A stretch of DNA of 64,000 bases from IMGVR_UViG_3300022839_000006:1-64000, one strand, 5' to 3'. Shown: positions 2,777 to 44,605, numbered from the stretch's first letter. Notes: generated by a model from the letters alone, not told the origin. Program-made: numbers and translations.

Positions 2777-3700
2777 ATGTCTTTTGCAAATTTAAAGAAG
2801 AACCGTTCAAGCTCACTGGACAAACTTTCGTCACAGCTTGACAAGATGGCCTCAAAAGGCTTCGCAGATCCCCTCAAAGAAAAATACTGGACCCCTACTC
2901 GCGACACTGCAGGTAATGGATTCGCAATCATTCGCTTTCTGCCTGCTGCAGAGGGTGATGACGTTCCTTTCGTTCGTGTGTGGGATCACGCATTTAAGAG
3001 TACAGGTGGATGGTACATCGAGAAGTCTTTGTCCACTATTGGACAAGATGATCCGTTGGGCAAATTCAACGCAAAGCTGTGGAATACAGGGAACGAAGCT
3101 GACAAAGAGCAAGCTCGCAAGCAGAAGCGTCGTCTGAAGTACCATTCAAACATTCTCGTCGTCAAAGATTCAGCTGAACCTGAAAACGAAGGCAAGGTCT
3201 TTCTTTACGCGTACGGTAAAAAGATCTTTGACAAGCTGAACGACATGATGAAGCCACAGTTCGAAGACGAAACGCCAATCAACCCATTCGACTTCTGGGA
3301 AGGTGCTAACTTCAAACTGAAGATTCGTCAATATGAAGGCTATCCAAACTATGATCGTTCAGAGTGGGAAGAAGCGTCTCAACTGTACGATGGTGACGAA
3401 GTCAAGCTTGAAGAGACGTACAAGCAGCTGAATTCTCTTGCAGAATTGATTGCACCTTCACAGTTCAAAACATACGATGATCTGCAGGCACGTCTCCACA
3501 AAGTGCTTGGCGTTTCAGGCAACCTCGGTGAAAGTAGCAATACAACTGCAGAGAATATGGTTGACGAGGACCTCGACATGAGTAAACTCAGCAACGTTTC
3601 AGAAGAACCTGAAAAGAAGAGCTCTACTTCTGACACGTCCCCGTCCGCTGATACAGACGACGACGATTTGGCATTCTTCCGCAATCTCGCCGACAATTAA
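2777..3700 (+). CDS. 32: Single-stranded DNA-binding protein gp32
   Basis: GNGFAIIRFLP, WYIEKSLST, GKKIFDK, NPFDFWEGANFKLKIR motifs; acidic C-tail DDDDLAFFRNLADN. Confidence 0.97.
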   Translation: MSFANLKKNRSSSLDKLSSQLDKMASKGFADPLKEKYWTPTRDTAGNGFAIIRFLPAAEGDDVPFVRVWDHAFKSTGGWYIEKSLSTIGQDDPLGKFNAKLWNTGNEADKEQARKQKRRLKYHSNILVVKDSAEPENEGKVFLYAYGKKIFDKLNDMMKPQFEDETPINPFDFWEGANFKLKIRQYEGYPNYDRSEWEEASQLYDGDEVKLEETYKQLNSLAELIAPSQFKTYDDLQARLHKVLGVSGNLGESSNTTAENMVDEDLDMSKLSNVSEEPEKKSSTSDTSPSADTDDDDLAFFRNLADN

Positions 3701-3767: not shown

Positions 3768-4046
3768 ATGACAAAAAAGACAGACTCAGATGTTGAGTTT
3801 GACTTCGGATTTTCGTTCGTTGACGAGAATGTTGAAGCCAAACTCAAAGAACATTCATCACACAAAGAAGAGATGGAAGAATTGCAATCACGTGTAGATC
3901 TTCTATATGATACCATCACTCCGTTTCTTGACAACTTATGCAGAAACCCAAGCAGGTCTACTATTCTTTGGCCTGATAGAGTGGAAAAGATTACTGAATT
4001 TAAGACACGTTTGAAAATGATCACAGAAGGGAAACATAAAAAATGA
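3768..4046 (+). CDS. Conserved hypothetical protein upstream of uvsX
   Basis: FDFGFSFVDE...FLDNLCRNP....ILWPDR pattern typical of T4-like aquatic phages; overlaps uvsX start. Confidence 0.65.
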   Translation: MTKKTDSDVEFDFGFSFVDENVEAKLKEHSSHKEEMEELQSRVDLLYDTITPFLDNLCRNPSRSTILWPDRVEKITEFKTRLKMITEGKHKK

Positions 4047-4951
4047 GTACACTACTTGAAAAGATGCTAAGCACGGGGAGTACCAAATCTTCTGCTGTTC
4101 TATCCTCATCGCCCTTTTTCAATGCAAAGGAAGCAATTCCTACCGACCTCCCAATTCTCAACATTGCATTTAGTGGATCTATTGATGGTGGGCTTCTACC
4201 AGGATTGACTGTTGTTGCAGGTGTATCAAAGAGCTTCAAAACTCTACTGAGCCTCTACTGCATGAAGGCATATTTGGACAAGTACCCTGAGGGCATTGCG
4301 CTACTATATGATTCTGAGTTTGGTATTACACCAGAGTACATTGAGAGCATCGACATCGACATCGATCGCGTTGTTCACATTCCCGTTAAGGATGTGGAGG
4401 AGCTCAAGTTCGATATGGTTCAAAAGTTAGATGCGATTGGCAAAAAAGACAAAGTGTTTATCATGATTGACTCGGTCGGCAACCTTGCATCTAAGAAAGA
4501 GCTAGAAGATGCACAAAACGAAAAGTCTGTCGCGGACATGTCACGTGCCAAGAGCTTGAAGTCGTTGTTTCGTATCATCACGCCATACCTGACAACTAAA
4601 GGAATTCCGTGCCTTGCAGTGAATCACGTATATTCAGAAATCGGCCTATATCCGAAGGCTATTGTTAGTGGTGGGTGTGTAACTGCAGGTACTAATATTC
4701 AGACCCCAACTGGTCTCAAGTCAATCGAGGATTTCAATGTTGGAGAAAGAGTCATTACGCAGTACGGAGACATGGAAGTATCGCATGTCTGGAATCCTGA
4801 TACACTTGATGATGGCAACCCTGAATGTTTTGAAATTGAATTTGAGGATGGTTACATTGTCACGTGTTCTGATGAACATAGGTTCATTGTTGATGGAGAA
4901 TGGGTCGCAGCTAAAGACCTTAAACTTGGTGCCGAATGTCAAGTCGTTTAA
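4043..4951 (+). CDS. uvsX: UvsX recombinase N-extein fused to split-intein N-half
   Basis: Walker A variant GVSKSFKT, YDSEFG, IDSVGNLAS, DMSRAK; sequence switches at SGG|C to a Hint domain and stops. Confidence 0.95.
   Translation: MSTLLEKMLSTGSTKSSAVLSSSPFFNAKEAIPTDLPILNIAFSGSIDGGLLPGLTVVAGVSKSFKTLLSLYCMKAYLDKYPEGIALLYDSEFGITPEYIESIDIDIDRVVHIPVKDVEELKFDMVQKLDAIGKKDKVFIMIDSVGNLASKKELEDAQNEKSVADMSRAKSLKSLFRIITPYLTTKGIPCLAVNHVYSEIGLYPKAIVSGGCVTAGTNIQTPTGLKSIEDFNVGERVITQYGDMEVSHVWNPDTLDDGNPECFEIEFEDGYIVTCSDEHRFIVDGEWVAAKDLKLGAECQVV
4676..4948 (+). mobile_element. Split intein N-fragment (91 aa) in uvsX
   Basis: Block A C1-VTAGTNIQT; block B VTCSDEHRF; ends W.AAKDLKLG as in IntN halves; followed by a stop codon. 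Confidence 0.92.
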
Positions 4952-4970
4952 AATAATGTTATGAGCAGAG

Positions 4971-5026
4971 TAAGAGAGTCCTTAGTTATTATAAATGATG
5001 ATGACAACAATCAAAGGACTCTCTTA
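4971..5026 (+). promoter_or_regulatory. RBS-sequestering hairpin with a late-promoter-like element in its loop
   Basis: taagagagtcctt (4971-4983) pairs perfectly with aaggactctctta (5014-5026), covering AAGGA and the A of the ATG; TATAAATG at 4990-4997. Confidence 0.75.
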
Positions 5027-5895
5027 TGAACATCATTTACAAGATCACATTTCAACACCGTCTGGCTCAGAACATTCAGCCTTATTATTACATAGGATCA
5101 AAAACTAATTGTACTGTAGTCGAAGGTGTTATATTAAACTCTAAAGGTAAACCATATTACGGCAGTTCAACATGGAAAAACTATTATGATATAGTAGAAT
5201 CTGACACTTGCACAGTAGAAATATTACAAGAAGGATTCACGGACCACAAAGAATTGTTAACGGCTGAATGTGCTGTACAGGAAGAGTTAGAGGTAGTAGT
5301 ATCACCAGAATATTTTAATAGATCATTAGCATCAGTCAGCAATTTCAATAACCCTCTATATGCTTCATATAAGCATGCAACGACTGGCAAAATGGTTAGA
5401 TTAGAAAGGACTCACGAAAAGGTTCTTGACGGAACTTATGTGGGTGTATCTAAAGGTGTAAAGTTTACTGAAGAACAACGTAATAGTCGTGGCAGATCAG
5501 GCAAAGAAAACAAGTTTTACGGAAAAACCCACACTGATGAAACCAAAGCTAAAATATCTGCTGCTAATACCGGAAAGGTACGTACTGAAGAGTTTAAGCA
5601 AGCTGTTTCGGACCGTTGTAAGGGTGTACCAAAATCTCCTGAACATCGAGCAAAGATTGGACGCCCTGGTTTGATTATGCTTAAAAATATCAATACTTTA
5701 CAAACAATTAGAATATCAATAGATGATGCTCTATTACTAGATAATACTACGTGGCTTAACCCACAAAAGGTTAATACAAAAGTTAAAAAGCCTTGTAAAT
5801 ATTGTGGTCGTCTGTTCACAAAAGGAAATATGAACAGATGGCATGGTGAAAAATGCAAAAGTAAGAGTTTACATCCAGATGATAGTTTATTATAA
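5026..5895 (+). CDS. Free-standing GIY-YIG (Seg-like) homing endonuclease with NUMOD3 repeats
   Basis: IIYKIT...YYIGSK, YYGSS, conserved E and YFN; NUMOD3-like NKFYGKTHTDETKAKIS and KSPEHRAKIG; C-terminal CKYC...RWHGEKC. Confidence 0.88.
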   Translation: MNIIYKITFQHRLAQNIQPYYYIGSKTNCTVVEGVILNSKGKPYYGSSTWKNYYDIVESDTCTVEILQEGFTDHKELLTAECAVQEELEVVVSPEYFNRSLASVSNFNNPLYASYKHATTGKMVRLERTHEKVLDGTYVGVSKGVKFTEEQRNSRGRSGKENKFYGKTHTDETKAKISAANTGKVRTEEFKQAVSDRCKGVPKSPEHRAKIGRPGLIMLKNINTLQTIRISIDDALLLDNTTWLNPQKVNTKVKKPCKYCGRLFTKGNMNRWHGEKCKSKSLHPDDSLL

Positions 5896-5926
5896 TTGAC
5901 CAATCCAACACACAAAAGGAAACAAT

Positions 5927-6499
5927 ATGAAAATACGCTCTATTAGATCAGTAGGTAAGTTACCTGTATATGATCTATCAGTAAACAGTGACAATTATGA
6001 TGAGCAGCAATATGTGCTGGAAAATGGTGTAGTTACTCACAATACGGGAATCATGTATTCAGCAAATACTGTGTTCATCATCAGCAAGTCACAAGAGAAA
6101 GACGGAACTGAGCTTGCAGGATGGAAGTTCACAATCAACATCGAGAAGTCACGGTACGTCAAAGAGAAATCTAAACTACCATTCACTGTAATGTATGAGG
6201 ATGGTATACAAAAGTGGACTGCAATCTTCGACATTGCGATGGAATCTGGCTTCATCACGAAACCGAAGGTTGGTTGGTACAATCTTGTTGATCCTGAGAC
6301 AGGCGAAGTAGACGAGAAGAACTATCGTCAGGCAGATGTGGTTACTAACAATGCTTTTTTTGAAAAACTTGTTAAAAACGTGGATTTCAAAGAGTTTGTA
6401 GAGCGCAAGTTCAAACTGTCTGCAACTCAAAAGAAGTCGGACGACAGCCACGGAGAAGATGATGCAGATGTGGAAATGGACATGGACACATACGAATAA
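5927..6499 (+). CDS. uvsX: Split-intein C-half (39 aa, 5927-6043) fused to UvsX C-extein
   Basis: Own RBS aaagga; block F VYDLSV; block G VVTHN|T; then TGIMYSANTVFII..KSRYVKEKSK matching T4 UvsX after GG. Confidence 0.95.
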   Translation: MKIRSIRSVGKLPVYDLSVNSDNYDEQQYVLENGVVTHNTGIMYSANTVFIISKSQEKDGTELAGWKFTINIEKSRYVKEKSKLPFTVMYEDGIQKWTAIFDIAMESGFITKPKVGWYNLVDPETGEVDEKNYRQADVVTNNAFFEKLVKNVDFKEFVERKFKLSATQKKSDDSHGEDDADVEMDMDTYE

Positions 6500-6516
6500 A
6501 CAGTGTACAATTGAAT

Positions 6517-6543
6517 GATGGGCAGAGTGATACTCTGCCCATC
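6517..6543 (+). terminator. 12-bp stem hairpin between uvsX and 41
   Basis: gatgggcagagt-gat-actctgcccatc. Confidence 0.55.
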
Positions 6544-6570
6544 CCATTTCCATTATAACAAGAGGTCCTG

Positions 6571-7956
6571 ATGATAGAGCAAACTATTCTTGCTAATCTA
6601 CTTTACAATGGGGAGTTTTGTCGCAAAGTCATCCCATACATCAAAGAAGAGTATTTTGATGATGTTGCTACCAAAAAGATATTTGCATCTTTCTCTGAAT
6701 ATGTCAGTACATACAAAGAACCACCTTCAATTGAGGCTCTCAAGATTACGCTGGAGGCGCGTAAAGATCTCAACGAGGATTTGTTTAAAGCTGTTAATAC
6801 AGCCGTCGACGAGTTGAAGATTGATGCAGCAACTAATCAAGATTGGCTTTTAGGCGAGACAGAGAAGTTCTGCCAAGACAAGGATCTGTTCAATTCAATT
6901 AGAAAAGCAATTTTGATTCTTGATGGGCAAGACAAAGAGTTTGACAAGGGTGCTATTCCTAAGCTGTTGTCTGATTCGCTTGGAATCAACTTTGATAGTC
7001 ACATTGGGCATGATTATATTGAAGATGCAGACAGTCGTTATGATTTCTATCATCGCACAGAAGAGCGAATTCCTTTTGACATTGATCTGTTGAACCAAAT
7101 CACTAAGGGTGGACTGCCCCGCAAATCCTTGACGTTGATTTTAGCGACCACAGGTGGTGGCAAAAGTTTGATGAAATGTCACATGGCTGCAGCTTCTCTT
7201 ATGCATGCCAAGAACGTCCTCTACATAACAGCTGAGATGGCTGAGGAGAGAATTGCAGAACGCATTGATGCTAATCTATTAGACGTCACAATTGATCAGC
7301 TACGAGAAATGCCCAGAGAAATGTTCAATACAAGAATTGCCAAGGTTAAAAGCAGAACGCCCGGAAAACTTGTAGTCAAAGAATACCCTACAGGGTCTGC
7401 TCACGCAGGACACTTTAGACATCTTCTCAATGAGCTGAAACTAAAGAAGGGGTTTGTTCCTGATATTATCTTCATTGATTATCTCAACATCTGTGCATCT
7501 TCTCGTGTGAAGGGTGCAGCAGCCGCAAACTCATACACACTGGTCAAGTCAATCGCTGAGGAAATACGTGGTTTAGCAATGGAGTTTGATTGTCCTATTG
7601 TATCGTCAAGTCAGTACAACCGCGGAGCATACGATTCGAGCGACGTTGACCTCACAAACACGTCTGAATGTATCTACGTTAAAGAAACAGTTACCATGAG
7701 TGACGGAACGTCGAGATGCATATCTGACCTGAAACCAGGCGACAAAATTAAAAGCGAAGACAGTACAAAGCTAGTCACGATGGTCCACCATCCTAAGATG
7801 AAGGATTGTGTCAAGATTAAAATGAACAGCGGCAAGTCAATCACTGTCAGTAAGGATCACGTATTTCCATCTATGTCAAACGACGGTGTTGTGTCGCGAC
7901 TATCTGTCAGTCAGGGACTAAATGTAGGTTACAGTCTTAATGTGGTAGAGGATTAA
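6571..7956 (+). CDS. 41: Replicative helicase gp41 N-extein fused to split-intein N-half (7669-7953, 95 aa)
   Basis: Walker A ATTGGGKS, AEMAEERIAERIDAN, IFIDYLN, SIAEEIRGLA; switches at NTSE|C to Hint (block B ITVSKDHVF). Confidence 0.95.
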   Translation: MIEQTILANLLYNGEFCRKVIPYIKEEYFDDVATKKIFASFSEYVSTYKEPPSIEALKITLEARKDLNEDLFKAVNTAVDELKIDAATNQDWLLGETEKFCQDKDLFNSIRKAILILDGQDKEFDKGAIPKLLSDSLGINFDSHIGHDYIEDADSRYDFYHRTEERIPFDIDLLNQITKGGLPRKSLTLILATTGGGKSLMKCHMAAASLMHAKNVLYITAEMAEERIAERIDANLLDVTIDQLREMPREMFNTRIAKVKSRTPGKLVVKEYPTGSAHAGHFRHLLNELKLKKGFVPDIIFIDYLNICASSRVKGAAAANSYTLVKSIAEEIRGLAMEFDCPIVSSSQYNRGAYDSSDVDLTNTSECIYVKETVTMSDGTSRCISDLKPGDKIKSEDSTKLVTMVHHPKMKDCVKIKMNSGKSITVSKDHVFPSMSNDGVVSRLSVSQGLNVGYSLNVVED

Positions 7957-7959
7957 CAT

Positions 7960-8574
7960 ATGAATGACAGCCAAATGGAAAAGATGCAGAACGATTGTTT
8001 TGTTAAAGCTCATCATATGATCGCCAATAACATGACCAAAGAGATGGACTTGTTTGACCTGACAGATCTGCTGATAAGCATGGAGATGGAGAAGGAGGAG
8101 AAGCAACAGGTTGAAGACAGTAAAATTGATTATAATGATACCATTGTAGAAATTGAGAATGTCGGCATGGTGGAAACGGTAGATATATCTGTAACAGGTA
8201 GTCAATTGTTCTACTGCAACAACATCTTGACAAAAAACAGCATGGGGATTGCTCACACTGCAGATTGTATCCTCGGCTTGATCTCTTCAGAAGAATTGGA
8301 GGCGATGGGCCAAATCATGATCAAGCAGTTAAAAAACAGATGGGGCGATCTTGGATTCTATAGACGGTTTGTTGTTGGAATAGACAGATCAAAAATGAAG
8401 CTGTATGACTTGGAAGAAGGTGCGCAGAGCGATGTTCAAAACGAGACAAGGAAAAAACAACAACCACGAGAGGATGAGGATAAGCCTACGTTCGATACCT
8501 CTAACTTCGGACAAGAGGAATCATTTAGAATGAAACCTTCTTGGAAGAAAACTAAGGCAGACGGATTCATATGA
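7960..8574 (+). CDS. 41: Split-intein C-half (7960-8238) fused to gp41 C-extein
   Basis: RBS GAGGA at 7948-7952; block F TVDISV; block G ILTKN|S; then SMGIAHTAD...KQLKNRWGD..RFVVGIDRSKMKLYD. Confidence 0.93.
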   Translation: MNDSQMEKMQNDCFVKAHHMIANNMTKEMDLFDLTDLLISMEMEKEEKQQVEDSKIDYNDTIVEIENVGMVETVDISVTGSQLFYCNNILTKNSMGIAHTADCILGLISSEELEAMGQIMIKQLKNRWGDLGFYRRFVVGIDRSKMKLYDLEEGAQSDVQNETRKKQQPREDEDKPTFDTSNFGQEESFRMKPSWKKTKADGFI

Positions 8575-8663
8575 TAAGATAGTTGCCTTTTGTGTAGAGG
8601 CGCGCTATGATTAGGTAACAGCTCAACGCGTTGAGTTATAAATACAAACACAGCCGAAAGGAA

Positions 8664-11459: not shown

Positions 11460-12677
11460 GTGAACATGAACTACGAATCGGGACTTGATGTTGCCTTGAA
11501 CCTTCTACGTTCAGAGGGACGTTACAGGACGTTTGTTGATATTGAGCGCAAAAGGGGTGCATATCCTACCGCTACGTGGTACGATATAGATGGAGAACGT
11601 CGAGACATTGTTGTGTGGTGTGGCAACGATTATCTCGGCATGGGTCAACATCCTGTAGTTTTAGAGGCAATGGCTGTTGCACTTGAGGCAACAGGAGCGG
11701 GTTCAGGCGGCACGAGAAACATATCAGGAACCACAGTATACCACGGCAGACTTGAAGCGGAACTGTCTGATTTGCATCAGACAGAGGCTGCTCTTGTATT
11801 CACCTCAGCATACAATGCCAACGATGCTACATTGTCAACGTTGCCCAAGCTCTTTCCAGGCCTCATCATATATTCCGATGCGCTGAATCACGCTTCGATG
11901 ATTGAGGGCATGAGACGTAATGGTGGCGCAAAGCGTATCTTTAGGCACAACGATGTTGACCATCTACGTGATCTACTTGCTGCTGACGATCCATCTGCTC
12001 CAAAGTTAATTGCATTCGAATCTATATACTCGATGGATGGTGATTTTGCACCGATAGAAAGAATATGTGATCTTGCGGATGAATTTAACGCTCTTACGTA
12101 CATTGACGAGGTACATGCTGTCGGCATGTACGGGCCACGTGGAGCAGGCGTATGTGAGCGTGACGGTCTGATGGGTAGAATTGATATTATCAACGGTACA
12201 TTGGCCAAAGCCTACGGCGTGGCAGGTGGCTACATCGCTGGATCAGCCAAGATGTGCGACGCAATACGATCTTATGCGCCAGGATTTATATTTACGTCCT
12301 CTATGCCTCCTGCCGTTGCTGCTGGGGCAGCAGCATCAGTACGTTATTTGAAAACCGCGCAACATATGCGCGACACGCACCTACTTCGTGTCAACATGTT
12401 GAAAGGACACTTTAAAAGGATTGGACTACCTTTGATTGATAACGGCAGTCACATTGTTCCTGTACATGTAGGCAACCCCATCCACTGTAAGGCATTGTCT
12501 GACATGTTACTAGAACAACATGGAATTTATGTGCAGCCTATCAACTTTCCTACGGTCCCACGTGGAACTGAGAGACTTCGGTTCACGCCTTCTCCTGTTC
12601 ACAGCATTGGCCAAATAGACCATTTGGTTCAGGCGATGGACGAACTTTGGCATAGGTGCACACTCGGCCGCTCTTAG
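11460..12677 (+). CDS. hemA: 5-aminolevulinate synthase (PLP-dependent, Shemin pathway)
   Basis: [60 protein letters not shown] (PLP lysine), [18 protein letters not shown]. Confidence 0.96.
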
Positions 12678-26294: not shown

Positions 26295-27533
26295 ATGCAG
26301 GTAAGAAAAAGAAACGGAACGCTAGAAGAATTCGGTTCCGTTAAAATAGAGAACGCTGTGTCAAAAGCGATGAAATCTATTGGGATAAAGAGTAAGTCTA
26401 TTCCTGTGGAAGTCGCAACAGACGTCACAGATAAAATAATGAAAGAGTATGATGGATTGAGTGTCGAGGTTGATGTTGTTCACCTTGCTGTTGAAAATGT
26501 GTTGATGGATATGGGGCTGCATGACCTTGCACGTGAATATATTCTTTATCGTCACAAAAATATGCCTGACATCTTTCGGAAGCGTACAAATCTAAAACCT
26601 TACGAATATCCACAACTTATAGAATATGTTGATGCAATTCGCCACAGCTATTGGACCCACACAGAATTTAATTTCACGTCTGATATCCAAGACATGAAAG
26701 TTAAGATGACACCATCTGAGGTAGAAATTGTGAAAAGATCTATGCTTGCTATTTCGCAGATTGAGGTACAGGTGAAAACTTTTTGGGCTAAGATTGGTGA
26801 CAAGATGCCAAAGCCGGAAGTTCAAGCTGTTGGCATAACTTTTGGCGAATCAGAAGTTCGACATGCAGATGCGTATTCGAATTTAATTGAAATAATGGGG
26901 CTGAACGAAGAATTTGAAAAAATTGTTGAAGTTCCTGCCATCAGAAAACGCATTGCATATCTTGAACAATCAATACAAGCGCCAATAGACGATAAAGATT
27001 ATTTTTATAAAATAATTCTATTTTCAATGTTTGTGGAAAACGTATCTTTGTTTTCCCAGTTCCTAATTATCATGGCTTTCAACAAACACAAGAACATCTT
27101 GAAGGGTATTTCCAACGCCGTAGAAGCAACGTCGAAAGAAGAAGATGTCCACGCACGATTTGGGTTTGAAATTGTAAACATCATCAAGGCCGAAAACCCA
27201 GAATGGTGGACCAAGGACACGACGACAGAAATTAACCGACTTGCACGTGACGCATTCAAGGCAGAATCTGCAATTGTTGATTGGATATACGGCGACGTAG
27301 ATCTTGATTTCATGCCAAAAGACACTGTAAAAGAGTTTCTCAAGTACAGGTTCAACCAGTCTTTGGTTGCAATTGACATGAAGCCATTGTATGATGTAGA
27401 CGAAGAGAAGGTACGAACAACAGACTGGTTCGTAGAAGAAATTCTTAGCACAAAAAATTCCGACTTTTTTGTTAAAAAATCCACTAGTTATAACAAAAAA
27501 TCTAAATCTTTTTCAGAAGATGACCTGTTCTAG
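26295..27533 (+). CDS. nrdB: Ribonucleotide reductase beta subunit with N-terminal ATP-cone (NrdBi / class Id-like)
   Basis: ATP-cone MQVRKRNG...LAREYILYR; ligand motifs SQIEVQVKTFW, ESEVRHADAY, VENVSLFSQF, KEEDVH. Confidence 0.93.
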   Translation: MQVRKRNGTLEEFGSVKIENAVSKAMKSIGIKSKSIPVEVATDVTDKIMKEYDGLSVEVDVVHLAVENVLMDMGLHDLAREYILYRHKNMPDIFRKRTNLKPYEYPQLIEYVDAIRHSYWTHTEFNFTSDIQDMKVKMTPSEVEIVKRSMLAISQIEVQVKTFWAKIGDKMPKPEVQAVGITFGESEVRHADAYSNLIEIMGLNEEFEKIVEVPAIRKRIAYLEQSIQAPIDDKDYFYKIILFSMFVENVSLFSQFLIIMAFNKHKNILKGISNAVEATSKEEDVHARFGFEIVNIIKAENPEWWTKDTTTEINRLARDAFKAESAIVDWIYGDVDLDFMPKDTVKEFLKYRFNQSLVAIDMKPLYDVDEEKVRTTDWFVEEILSTKNSDFFVKKSTSYNKKSKSFSEDDLF

Positions 27534-27627: not shown

Positions 27628-29724
27628 ATGGATAGACGAGAACCATTTTATTGGCTAAACGAAGACTCGCGCAAATTCTTGTCACGAGGATATTTGAGCG
27701 AATCGGAAACACCTGAAAGTCGCATTCGCGACATTGCAAACACTGCAGAAAAATACCTTAACGAACCAGGATTTGCAGATAAATTCTACGAATATATGAG
27801 TCGTGGATATTATTCATTGGCTTCGCCTGTGTGGGCTAACTACGGCAAAGCGCGTGGTTTACCTGTTTCGTGCTTTGGATCATACATTGACGATCACATG
27901 GAATCGATTATGTACGGTGTTGCTGAAAACGGCATGCTAATGAAAAACGGTGGCGGGTGCTCTGGTTACTTCGGTGCAGTACGTCCACGTGGTTCCCATA
28001 TTAAGGATTCAGGCGAGTCCTCAGGATCTGTTCACTTTATGCAGCTATATGATACACTGTCGTCTGTAATATCGCAAGGGTCTGTTCGCAGAGGGTTCTT
28101 CACAGCATATCAAGACATCGATCACAAAGATGCGGACGAGTTCCTTGATATCGGTTCAGAAGGCAATCCGATTCAAGGTCTGACAACAGGAATTGTTGTA
28201 TCGGACGATTTTATTCGTCAGGTCAAGGCAGGTGATGCAGAGAAGCGTCGTCTTTGGGCTAAGGTTCTTCAACGTAGATCAGAGATGGGATATCCATACA
28301 TCCTATTTGGCGATAATGTAAACAATAACAAGCCACAGGTTTATAAAGACAAGGATATGCGTGTTCATGCTAGTAACATGTGCCTTCGTGGGGACAGTGT
28401 TATTACAATACAACTTCCTTCCAACACGCTTCCTGAAGTCGTTGAAATTGAAACATTCTGTAAGTTGTGGGCTATTGGCGGTATCCCATCTGATACAAAG
28501 GTTAAAACAGAACATGGTTTTCAAGTGGTGACTGCTGCTGCTCAAACAGGGTCCACTAAAGATATGATTCGAATCACAGACGATGTTACAGGAAAAGTTG
28601 TTGAGTGTACGCCCAACCACAAGCTATTCACTCAAAATAGAGGTTGGGTCGAGGCTCAAGATCTTACAGAAGAAGATCAATTGCTGATTGATGGTTCGTC
28701 GAGCAAAACAATCAAAACAGAAAGAATTACGTACGAAGAAGAAATCCCTGTGTACGACATCACAGTGCCAGAAACGCAATCATTTTTTGCTAATGATGTA
28801 TTAGTACACAACTGTGCAGAAATTTCCCTACCATCTTCTGTCGATGAGACGTTTACGTGTGTGCTTTCCTCAATTAACGTACTCTTTTGGGACGAACTCG
28901 CTCAAACAGATGCAATTGAAGTGATGACTAAATTTCTTGATACGGTATGCGAAGAATTTATCATCAAGACAGAGGGCCAAGAGTATCTCAAACGTGCACG
29001 AAACTTTGCAATTAATCACCGTGCATTGGGCGTAGGCATTCTTGGTTGGCACTCGTATCTTCAATCAAACATGATTCCTTTTGAATCGAAGGCAGCCTCC
29101 AAAAAGAATCTTGAGATTGCTAAGACGCTTCAGGAAAGATCGCATGCAGCCTCACGCGAGCTCGCTGTGTCGCTGGGCGAGCCTCCACTGCTTGAAGGCT
29201 ATGGAATGCGTAACGCAACTACCATGGCAATTGCGCCGACGCGGTCTAGTTCGTTTATTTTAGGACAAGTCAGCCAGTCCATTGAACCTGAATTCTCCAA
29301 CTGTTACGTCAAAGATCTTGCTAAGATTAAAGTAACAATCAAAAACCCCTACCTTGACAAACTACTTAGTGAAAAAGACAAAAATACGTATGATGTGTGG
29401 GAGTCGATTAAGACAAACGACGGATCAGTACAACACCTTACGTTTTTGACTGATGAAGAGAAGGAAGTGTTCAAGACGTTCTCGGAGATAAATGCATATG
29501 CAGTAATTGATCACGCTGCAATCAGACAACAATACATCGACCAAGGACAGAGCTTGAATCTTATGCTAGATCCTGACATGTCTGTAAAGGAAATCAACGC
29601 ACTGTATCTGTATGCACACGAGATGGGTGTAAAGAGTCTGTATTACAGCTTCTCAATGTCTGCTGCACAAGCGTTGACACGTAAGCGTGTACAATCGATG
29701 GACTGTGCTGCTTGCGAAGCCTAA
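27628..29724 (+). CDS. nrdA: Ribonucleotide reductase alpha subunit lacking an ATP-cone, with a cis mini-intein
   Basis: SPVWANYG..RGLPVSCF, GGGCSG, VRRG, SNM|C..HN|CAEI, RALGVGILG, AIAPT, QGQSLN, KSLYY, C-terminal CAAC. Confidence 0.95.
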   Translation: MDRREPFYWLNEDSRKFLSRGYLSESETPESRIRDIANTAEKYLNEPGFADKFYEYMSRGYYSLASPVWANYGKARGLPVSCFGSYIDDHMESIMYGVAENGMLMKNGGGCSGYFGAVRPRGSHIKDSGESSGSVHFMQLYDTLSSVISQGSVRRGFFTAYQDIDHKDADEFLDIGSEGNPIQGLTTGIVVSDDFIRQVKAGDAEKRRLWAKVLQRRSEMGYPYILFGDNVNNNKPQVYKDKDMRVHASNMCLRGDSVITIQLPSNTLPEVVEIETFCKLWAIGGIPSDTKVKTEHGFQVVTAAAQTGSTKDMIRITDDVTGKVVECTPNHKLFTQNRGWVEAQDLTEEDQLLIDGSSSKTIKTERITYEEEIPVYDITVPETQSFFANDVLVHNCAEISLPSSVDETFTCVLSSINVLFWDELAQTDAIEVMTKFLDTVCEEFIIKTEGQEYLKRARNFAINHRALGVGILGWHSYLQSNMIPFESKAASKKNLEIAKTLQERSHAASRELAVSLGEPPLLEGYGMRNATTMAIAPTRSSSFILGQVSQSIEPEFSNCYVKDLAKIKVTIKNPYLDKLLSEKDKNTYDVWESIKTNDGSVQHLTFLTDEEKEVFKTFSEINAYAVIDHAAIRQQYIDQGQSLNLMLDPDMSVKEINALYLYAHEMGVKSLYYSFSMSAAQALTRKRVQSMDCAACEA
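28381..28812 (+). mobile_element. 144-aa mini-intein without endonuclease at the catalytic cysteine of NrdA
   Basis: C1-LRGDSVI; block B ECTPNHKLF; block F VYDITV; block G VLVHN|C; excision restores SNMCAEI. Confidence 0.95.
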
Positions 29725-43105: not shown

Positions 43106-44605
43106 ATGAAAAATATTCTAAGCCTGCTTACTTCCATCATGCGTACCGATGGATACAAGACTTCACAATTCTTACAATACCCAGCTGACACGCAATACAT
43201 CAGCTCATATATTGAATCGCGCGGCGGCGCTGACACCAGTGTATTCTTTGGTCTACAAGCATTCATCAAAGACTATATGCAAACCCCCATTACTCAATCC
43301 GATATCAACTTTGCAGAAGCAGTTTTTACAAAGTACGGTACTCCCTTCAACCGAGAAGGTTGGGAGATCATCGTCAACGAGTTTGATGGGTATCTGCCAC
43401 TGGAGATTGAAGCGGTTCCAGAAGGTACTGTTATGACAACCAGAAACATCCAAGTTCAAGTTGTAAACACTGATCCCAGAATGGGATGGTTGACATCATA
43501 CGTTGAAACTGCTCTGCTACGTGGGGTATGGTATCCTTCAACAGTGGCAACCAAATCTCGCGAGATGAAGGTGATGATTGCACAGGCACTGTTCAAAACC
43601 AGTGACATCCCACTTGATATTCTAATGGGGCCTGTGTTGAATTTCACTCTCAATGACTTTGGTGCTCGTGGTGCGTCATCCACAGAGACTGCCGTTCTTG
43701 GTGGGATGAGTCACCTTGTAAATTTCTGGGGCAGTGACACAATTGAGGGCATGATTGGCACACATGTTTACTATTCTGCTGATATTACAGACGTGTCTAC
43801 ACCTGTTGTTGCAGGGTCAATCGCGGCAAGTGAGCATAGTAGTATTACCAGCTGGGGCAAGGAAAACGAAGGTAAAGCATATGCCAATATGATTGACCAG
43901 TTCTCTGCGCCTGGTAAAATTTACGCCTGTGTCAGCGATTCATACGACATCTACAATGCAACCAAAAACATTTGGGGATATGAACTCAAGGTTCAAGTAA
44001 TTGAATCGGGAGGCACTCTGGTTGTACGTCCAGACTCAGGTGATCCCGTTACTGTGCCAATCGAAATCCTTGACATTCTGGCAGAGCAGTTTGGATACAC
44101 TGTAAACAGCAAGGGATTCAAGGTTCTTGCGCAGCGTGAAGATGGGTCCGCCATTGTGAAAGTCATCCAAGGTGATGGTCTTGATGTGGTCACCATGAAA
44201 CAATTACTGGACAATGTGATTGAGGCTGGATACAGTGTGGAAAACATTGCGCTGGGCATGGGCGGCGGACTCTTGCAAAAAGTAGACCGTGACACTCTGA
44301 AATATGCCATGAAGGCTTCTGCCAGATGCGATTCAGATGGAGTATGGCATGATGTGTTCAAAGATCCTATTGCAGATCCTGGCAAGACTTCCAAGAAAGG
44401 TCGGCTGGGACTGATCTACGAATGTGGAGTTGGTTCATGTGGTTACCGGACACTGCCCAAGGAATTTGCAGATGAAAAAGGCAATATCCTGCGTACAGTG
44501 TACCGGAATGGCGTGCAATTAATTGACGATGATTTTGAAACTGTTCGAACACGGGCAGGTCTGAAAGAATCAGAATACAATCCACAACCAATTGAACGAT
44601 TCTAA
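43106..44605 (+). CDS. nadV: Nicotinamide phosphoribosyltransferase
   Basis: TDGYKTSQ..QYP, FFGLQAFIK, LNDFGARG, AASEHS, VSDSYD, VRPDSGDP, IQGDG, GMGGGLLQKVDRDT.KYAMK, KTSKKGRL. Confidence 0.97.
   Translation: MKNILSLLTSIMRTDGYKTSQFLQYPADTQYISSYIESRGGADTSVFFGLQAFIKDYMQTPITQSDINFAEAVFTKYGTPFNREGWEIIVNEFDGYLPLEIEAVPEGTVMTTRNIQVQVVNTDPRMGWLTSYVETALLRGVWYPSTVATKSREMKVMIAQALFKTSDIPLDILMGPVLNFTLNDFGARGASSTETAVLGGMSHLVNFWGSDTIEGMIGTHVYYSADITDVSTPVVAGSIAASEHSSITSWGKENEGKAYANMIDQFSAPGKIYACVSDSYDIYNATKNIWGYELKVQVIESGGTLVVRPDSGDPVTVPIEILDILAEQFGYTVNSKGFKVLAQREDGSAIVKVIQGDGLDVVTMKQLLDNVIEAGYSVENIALGMGGGLLQKVDRDTLKYAMKASARCDSDGVWHDVFKDPIADPGKTSKKGRLGLIYECGVGSCGYRTLPKEFADEKGNILRTVYRNGVQLIDDDFETVRTRAGLKESEYNPQPIERF

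Follow-up and report, generated by a model that had tools for sequence, protein, structure and literature searches.

Two genes of a T4-like phage, uvsX and gp41, are each interrupted by a split intein at the start of the 208 kb IMG/VR contig IMGVR_UViG_3300022839_000006, of which we analysed the first 64 kb (the window), and the two pairs of intein halves carry opposite charge polarity. The locus is very probably a tandem of two independent 'fractured genes', in which each intein lineage brought its own charge polarity, and any benefit for pairing is a by-product rather than an adaptation. This reading is carried by the anatomy of the locus, its intein boundaries, the charges recorded across both intein families, the signs of purifying selection and the predicted fold of a cis-splicing relative. 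A sequence-only reading of the window had proposed that selection against cross-splicing of the two pairs may have shaped the inverted polarity, and that the pairs were a candidate for an undescribed system; its observations on the sequence were accurate, and its adaptive interpretation did not hold.

Five open reading frames (ORFs) lie on the + strand downstream of gp32 (2777-3700): the UvsX N-extein with the N-terminal intein half (IntN; 4043-4951), a homing endonuclease (5026-5895), the C-terminal intein half (IntC) with the UvsX C-extein (5927-6499), the gp41 N-extein with its IntN (6571-7956), and a leader, IntC and gp41 C-extein (7960-8574). The UvsX N-extein (4043..4675, +; 211 amino acids, aa) is a RecA-like core running to ...IVSGG (Pfam RecA, E=8.6e-9) that abuts the C-extein in unsplit homologues, and it is followed by a 91-aa IntN opening with Cys1 (4676..4948, +) and a stop codon at 4949-4951. 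The partner IntC (5927..6043, +; 39 aa) starts MKIRSIRSVGK and ends THN, with the penultimate His present, and the C-extein (6044..6499, +; Pfam T4_UVSX_C, E=8.5e-10) begins with the Thr+1 nucleophile. In gp41, a DnaB-like helicase about 55% identical to the gp41 of a Synechococcus phage (myovirus), the 366-aa N-extein (6571..7668, +; Pfam DnaB_C, E=3.7e-17) ends ...DLTNTSE and a 95-aa IntN follows from Cys1 (7669..7953, +) to the stop TAA at 7954-7956. The second gp41 ORF comprises a 55-aa acidic leader (7960..8124, +), a 38-aa IntC core with an acidic first strand (8125..8238, +), which ends TKN and aligns to residues 97-128 of the gp41-1 intein, and a C-extein beginning with Ser+1 (SMGIAHTAD...; 8239..8574, +).

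The interval 4676-8238, where two neighbouring split-intein pairs had been proposed, spans exactly from Cys1 of the UvsX IntN to the terminal Asn of the gp41 IntC, and both pairs are canonical, in adjacent genes on the same strand and with exact boundaries. In each, IntN and IntC are on separate ORFs, divided at the canonical endonuclease-insertion point, and the division is conserved in relatives. A megablast of positions 4000-8600 against GenBank phages gave no match, and protein-level searches alone were informative. In about 50 related unsplit loci, the N- and C-extein matches of UvsX and of gp41 abut with a gap of 0 nucleotides, and excising the intein regions restores the uninterrupted proteins exactly; because of this gapless abutment, the intein boundaries can be considered real. 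A search of viral contigs with an alignment of the whole IntC ORF recovered mostly ordinary unsplit gp41, which served as a control for the junctions and for the status of the adjoining UvsX.

The hand counts of charged residues in the sequence-only reading were exact. The UvsX IntN has 19 D/E and 5 K/R (net -14), with a pairing strand, PECFEIEFEDGY, of -5; its IntC does open with a basic strand (MKIRSIRSVGKL, +4), but the whole IntC is net -1 (5 D/E, 4 K/R). The gp41 IntN, with 13 K/R and 11 D/E, is only weakly basic overall (net +2), its pairing strand KMKDCVKIKMNSGK reaching +4, and its leader plus IntC (93 aa) has 19 D/E and 7 K/R (net -12), with an IntC first strand, DTIVEIENVGMV, of -3. 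Polarity is therefore inverted on the homologous pairing strands, at -5/+4 for UvsX and +4/-3 for gp41. Both non-cognate N/C combinations would be like-charged, and the charge argument is physically sound. The inversion would also make the two IntN halves mutually attractive, and likewise the two IntC halves, which is not obviously advantageous. A role for electrostatics in the association of split-intein halves, which the sequence-only reading had cited as known, was indeed described already by Dassa et al. 2009 (PMC2677866). The three +1 nucleophiles attributed to this genome are all present: Thr in UvsX, Ser in gp41 and Cys in nrdA. The last follows a contiguous, cis-splicing mini-intein of 144 aa (28381..28812, +; CLRGD...VLVHN then Cys+1; Pfam Intein_splicing within a Ribonuc_red_lgC protein), which is unsplit and hence has no partner to choose.

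The same charge patterns occur where only one of the two genes is split, an outcome that the sequence-only reading had itself named as contradicting its proposal. Fourteen distinct split UvsX inteins were found at the identical site beside an unsplit gp41, together with two cis-splicing versions. In the 14 split versions, net charge lies between -6 and -16 for the IntN, is -4 or -5 for the N strand and ranges from +3 to +6 over the first 12 residues of IntC, and the N strand reads PECFEIEFEDG(Y/H/F/L) in nearly all versions of the family; the window values (-14, -5, +4) are typical and lie within the family range. The two cis-splicing inteins share the acidic N strand and basic C strand, and the cultured Escherichia phage HY03 and Shewanella phage Thanatos-1 combine the same UvsX charge pattern with an intact gp41 (475-476 aa). 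In the gp41 family, IntN ranges from +2 to +9 (11 members, the window at +2 being the least basic) and IntC with leader from -8 to -16 (28 members). Three contigs with an intact UvsX (L036, L038 and L041) have gp41 IntN values of +3 to +6 and IntC with leader at -12, and L057, a near-copy of the gp41-1 intein that also adjoins an intact UvsX, has N+/C- strands. The survey of loci with one and with two split inteins thus revealed a charge pattern neither specific to nor enhanced in the two-intein genomes. Because single-intein genomes and cis versions show the same patterns, polarity is a fixed trait of each intein lineage, older than their co-residence; as an inherited family trait, it is therefore not evidence of adaptation against mispairing. 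Polarity can also flip between related inteins, independently of co-residence: the UvsX IntN resembles gp41-1 more closely than the window gp41 IntN does, yet has the opposite polarity.

Selection in this genome or lineage to prevent cross-splicing of co-expressed split inteins is, in light of these patterns, very unlikely. It would be consistent with the inverted pairing strands and like-charged non-cognate combinations, with the finding that charge engineering is enough for orthogonality within one intein scaffold, a split intein derived from NpuDnaB (bioRxiv 10.1101/546465), and with the recurrence of the double split, in the same polarity combination, in a second independent lineage (L039/L040). 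However, patterns of the same magnitude exist where the other gene is unsplit and in cis versions, and the window gp41 IntN is the least basic of its family. A charge swap in NpuDnaE did not stop cross-reaction (10.1101/546465), and most unrelated split inteins are orthogonal irrespective of charge, 15 of 16 being so among themselves in a systematic test (PMC7090010). The two window inteins are distant from each other: their IntN halves have no significant similarity (E=0.57) and their IntC halves share a 17-residue strand only (E=0.006). Because they are so diverged, the two pairs are probably orthogonal whatever their charges. Chance alone would also suffice for the inversion. Of the five polarities reported in PMC2677866, two are N+/C- and three N-/C+, so that two random split inteins would be of opposite polarity about 48% of the time, and the inversion does not exceed this expectation.

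Several points weigh against the view of tandem, independently acquired fractured genes with lineage-fixed polarity. Trans-splicing of either pair and the simultaneous presence of all four intein halves in the cell are inferred, as is the orthogonality of the pairs. Genomes were classed as single-intein from the uvsX-gp41 neighbourhood of each contig only, and may carry further split inteins elsewhere. Where a penultimate His is usual, the gp41 intein has Lys, and its activity is assumed from conservation. Finally, all UvsX inteins found are N-/C+ and all gp41 inteins N+/C-, which leaves no natural variation against which the role of polarity could be compared.

This uniformity also bears on the possibility that lineage-fixed polarity acts as a compatibility filter, with two split inteins becoming established in one phage only if their polarities differ. 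Both independent double-split lineages do pair an N-/C+ UvsX intein with an N+/C- gp41 intein, as a filter would require. However, because each family has one polarity, any co-occurrence of uvsX and gp41 split inteins must be of opposite polarity; with no variation within either family and only two independent cases, such a filter is improbable, if slightly less so than selection in place. In L041, moreover, a VidaL-like intein and a gp41 intein share one protein, and their specificity evidently arises from very different architectures. The wider proposal that polarity is a filter on co-residence, that the acidic leader of the gp41 IntC is an undescribed capture or specificity module and that the pair is a naturally tuned orthogonal set is very doubtful, and the idea of charges tuned by nature for orthogonality is not supported.

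Under the favoured reading of tandem fractured genes, two unrelated mobile split-intein lineages would each have entered a T4-like (cyanophage-like) phage at a conserved position in a gene essential for replication or recombination. The cassette in uvsX is still complete, with IntN, a Seg-like homing endonuclease and IntC, and the one in gp41 has lost its endonuclease gene, leaving a stop-CAT-ATG junction with a Shine-Dalgarno sequence and an IntC that keeps its acidic two-helix leader. Each half-protein would be translated separately; IntN and IntC would then meet through a beta-strand zipper of complementary charge and fold into a HINT domain, and trans-splicing would yield full-length UvsX (through Thr+1) and gp41 (through Ser+1). 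Opposite polarity would probably help to avoid mispairing, as a by-product. Co-expression of the five ORFs is plausible because no convincing terminator was found between them.

The uvsX cassette contains candidate control signals. An RNA hairpin (4970..5027, +) sits between the UvsX-N stop and the endonuclease start, its 3' arm lying over the endonuclease's Shine-Dalgarno sequence (AAGGA) and the beginning of its AUG; the hairpin has a minimum free energy of -28.6 kcal/mol (z = -5.4), and none of 200 shuffled sequences folded as well. By analogy with the homing endonucleases of T4, this hairpin may limit translation of the endonuclease. The latter (5026..5895, +; 289 aa) is free-standing and Seg-like (NUMOD3, Pfam E=5.3e-10; PHROG homing-endonuclease families, E=7.7e-24 and 9.8e-22), with an N-terminal IYKI...YYIG that resembles GIY-YIG by eye, and syntenic endonuclease ORFs are found in relatives. 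Just upstream of the IntC/UvsX-C ORF is a sigma-70-like promoter match (5868..5896, +; TTTACA-17-TATAAT), a consensus match only, at 11 of 12 positions. With evidence at this consensus level, hairpin and promoter fit the model of a self-contained invading cassette, in which the invading endonuclease cassette supplies control signals for the downstream half (PMC2677866).

The UvsX intein itself is related to gp41-1. Its IntN has the block B motif CSDEH (S-x-x-H), its best relative in the PDB is the gp41-1 intein 6QAZ (E=4.9e-7), and it is 33% identical to the IntN of the gp41-1-like L057. For L026, a natural cis-splicing UvsX mini-intein, structure prediction gave a confident fold (predicted local distance difference test score, pLDDT, of 95.2) that superposes on the gp41-1 crystal structures 6QAZ and 6RIZ with template modelling (TM) scores of 0.85-0.88 and root-mean-square deviations of 1.7-1.9 Å. 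The UvsX family is thus predicted to have the HINT horseshoe fold. The gp41 IntN also has S-x-x-H in block B (VSKDH), and gp41-1 (6QAZ) is its best PDB match but a distant one (E=6.5e-4).

In gp41 the two halves are separated by the stop TAA and one codon, CAT, before the ATG at 7960, with GAGGA 8 nucleotides upstream of the ATG. Because relatives carry an endonuclease ORF between their gp41 halves (about 350 aa with weak homing-endonuclease similarity in L036, L039 and L041; two shorter ORFs in L038), the window gp41 cassette has, by comparison, lost its endonuclease gene. The two gp41 ORFs share a reading frame, with only the TAA and one codon between them, as might also be expected if the split were unreal, the TAA being a sequencing error or a read-through codon within a contiguous cis intein of about 190 aa. 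Such an artefact is extremely unlikely: a sister contig (L002/L034), about 92-95% identical, has the same TAA-CAT-ATG stop and spacing, at least 40 relatives start the IntC ORF at the leader Met, the endonuclease-like ORFs of about 350 aa divide the halves in relatives, the GAGGA Shine-Dalgarno sequence precedes the ATG, and no contiguous version was found in a search over a length range that would include one.

Comparison with the sister contig also bears on whether the inteins are functional. Synonymous codon changes were far more numerous than non-synonymous ones in all four halves and in the leader, for example 11 to 3 in the UvsX IntN, 23 to 8 in the gp41 IntN, 13 to 3 in the leader and 10 to 2 in the gp41 IntC core, a pattern that indicates purifying selection on both inteins and on the leader. 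A penultimate His (block G) is common in active inteins without being obligatory. The Lys found in its place in gp41 would be consistent with one or both inteins being splicing-dead, the enzyme halves then being held as non-covalent complexes by the intein halves. However, Cys1, S-x-x-H, the block-F Asp, the terminal Asn and the +1 Thr or Ser are conserved in relatives at 45-75% identity, both inteins bear the marks of purifying selection, and the Lys-Asn ending is invariant in the gp41 intein family rather than sporadic: K92, N93 and S94 do not vary in 28 aligned relatives, and the Thr-Lys-Asn terminus (8227-8238 here) is found in 28 of 28. Loss of splicing is, on this evidence, a highly improbable explanation.

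The leader is characteristic of this gp41 intein family. It is conserved in at least 40 proteins and predicted to form a two-helix hairpin (pLDDT 81-92; helices at residues 3-22 and 31-54). A leader profile searched against 1.84 billion representative proteins matched within its own gp41 intein family only, and there was no Pfam match in any of 28 members, no PHROG match and no meaningful Foldseek match in the PDB (all E>1). A feature search of the ESM Atlas gave a weak pointer, as a lead only, to inteins containing LAGLIDADG domains (score 0.79), and the leader might be a relic of an endonuclease domain. With low confidence, it might instead, being acidic, help to capture the Lys-rich IntN or keep it soluble.

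Fractured uvsX genes are widespread. Besides about 30 viral contigs, they were found in T4-like phages in culture, whose hosts are Escherichia, Salmonella, Yersinia, Proteus, Shewanella and Vibrio; HY03 (L121, NC_031047.1 99514-101999) and Thanatos-1 (L122, MT457552.1) have the order uvsX N half, homing endonuclease and C half. GenBank lists the uvsX pieces of cultured phages as separate genes, under the names 'DNA repair protein', 'recombinase' or 'recombination protein', and says nothing of an intein.

Several relatives differ from the window in the state of their cassettes. In the sister contig (L002:5477-5666, equivalent to L034:4040-4229), which is 92-98% identical at the protein level and keeps both split inteins, the uvsX endonuclease is internally deleted, with residues 1-42 and 266-289 left; this looks like an endonuclease caught in decay beside a split intein that is retained. 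L039 (2104-4264) is the second independent genome with both uvsX and gp41 split; its UvsX intein belongs to another lineage (36% identity) with an insertion point some 10 residues upstream, before SYGDPKTMSGGGG, and the accompanying endonuclease gene is encoded on the other strand. In L041 (3294-7549; IMGVR_UViG_3300042291_001899), gp41 is in three pieces. Its P-loop intein is an atypical, VidaL-like split (IntN of about 18 aa, IntC of about 123 aa; match to PDB 6VGV, E=4.5e-12) with an endonuclease gene on the opposite strand, a split intein of the window type with leader lies further downstream, and the middle polypeptide bears halves of both inteins, an IntC from one and an IntN from the other. 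As read from its sequence, L041 would be a natural three-fragment ligation and a stronger case of natural orthogonality than the window. The P-loop insertion of L058 (about 142 aa) lies within one continuous ORF and appears to be in cis. Split uvsX was found beside split gp41 in 2 of 5 independent lineages, compared with about 1 in 50 loci beside intact gp41 (L036-L120, with biased sampling), which suggests that some phage lineages accumulate mobile cassettes of intein and endonuclease.

Elsewhere in the window, GC content is 0.62 in bases 1-500 and 0.50 in the next 500, compared with about 0.40-0.45 in the remainder, and this GC-rich contig start (1-1000) could reflect a terminal repeat, foreign DNA or an artefact of assembly. 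Two genes resemble auxiliary metabolic genes: a class I/II aminotransferase (11460-12677; E=5.6e-69), where GC is raised to 0.47-0.49, and a nicotinamide/nicotinate phosphoribosyltransferase (43106-44605) with NAMPT_N and NAPRTase domains. The nrdB ORF (26295-27533), for the small subunit of ribonucleotide reductase, has an N-terminal ATP-cone domain (Pfam E=3.3e-16), a domain more usual on the large subunit.

Full-text literature searches for UvsX with intein or split intein found no paper describing a fractured uvsX. Inteins from the Lake Vida metagenome that are named after UvsX may be listed in the literature on atypical split inteins. The modestly new elements are a widespread fractured uvsX and a gp41 split intein with a new site, a Lys-Asn end and a helical leader. 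They extend the known class of phage fractured genes by two members and bring no conceptual change. Both inteins could provide extra parts for protein ligation, with Thr+1 and Ser+1 junctions, and the leader, if it does aid partner capture, would be a small new design principle.

The system itself, which the sequence-only reading had considered undescribed, belongs to a class for which both polarities and electrostatic steering were reported in 2009. The fractured genes of Dassa, London, Stoddard and Pietrokovski (PMC2677866), from phage-like metagenomic loci, have the same order as the window uvsX on one strand (N half with IntN, GIY-YIG-type endonuclease, IntC with C half), the same canonical split point at the endonuclease insertion and the same pairing strands of complementary charge, and their gp41-7 locus has also lost its endonuclease gene, in parallel with the window gp41. 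The fractured hosts listed there are gp41, NrdA, NrdJ, IMPDH, DnaE, ligase, terminase and one unknown; UvsX is not among them and appears only as an intact upstream gene, whereas the window has two fractured genes in tandem.

Among individual inteins, gp41-1 (6QAZ/6RIZ) shares with the window gp41 intein its host protein, N+/C- polarity, S-x-x-H, Ser+1 and probably the HINT fold, and its block B, SEEH, is an experimentally active example of the Ser variant seen in both window IntN halves. In contrast, gp41-1 ends HN and has no leader, and the window gp41 intein ends KN, has the 55-aa helical leader and is inserted 12 residues downstream, after ...SSDVDLTNTSE and not after ...TRSGY. The site of the gp41-1 to gp41-7 alleles, equivalent to residue 356 of P-SSM2 gp41 (...TRSGY then C ... 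HN then SSSDV), was compared with L057 and with L044/L049/L056, and it is not the site used in the window. The Npu and Ssp DnaE split inteins, whose association is thought to proceed by electrostatic steering and then folding, have the polarity of the UvsX intein (acidic IntN, basic first strand of IntC) but differ from it in having their halves at distant loci, no endonuclease, Cys+1 and a different host protein. The concept of non-cross-reacting pairs distinguished partly by charge has already been tested in engineered orthogonal sets (Pinto et al. 2020, PMC7090010; Beyer et al. 2019, 10.1101/546465). Those sets combine inteins of different organisms, whereas the two pairs of the window lie naturally side by side, with a predicted orthogonality.

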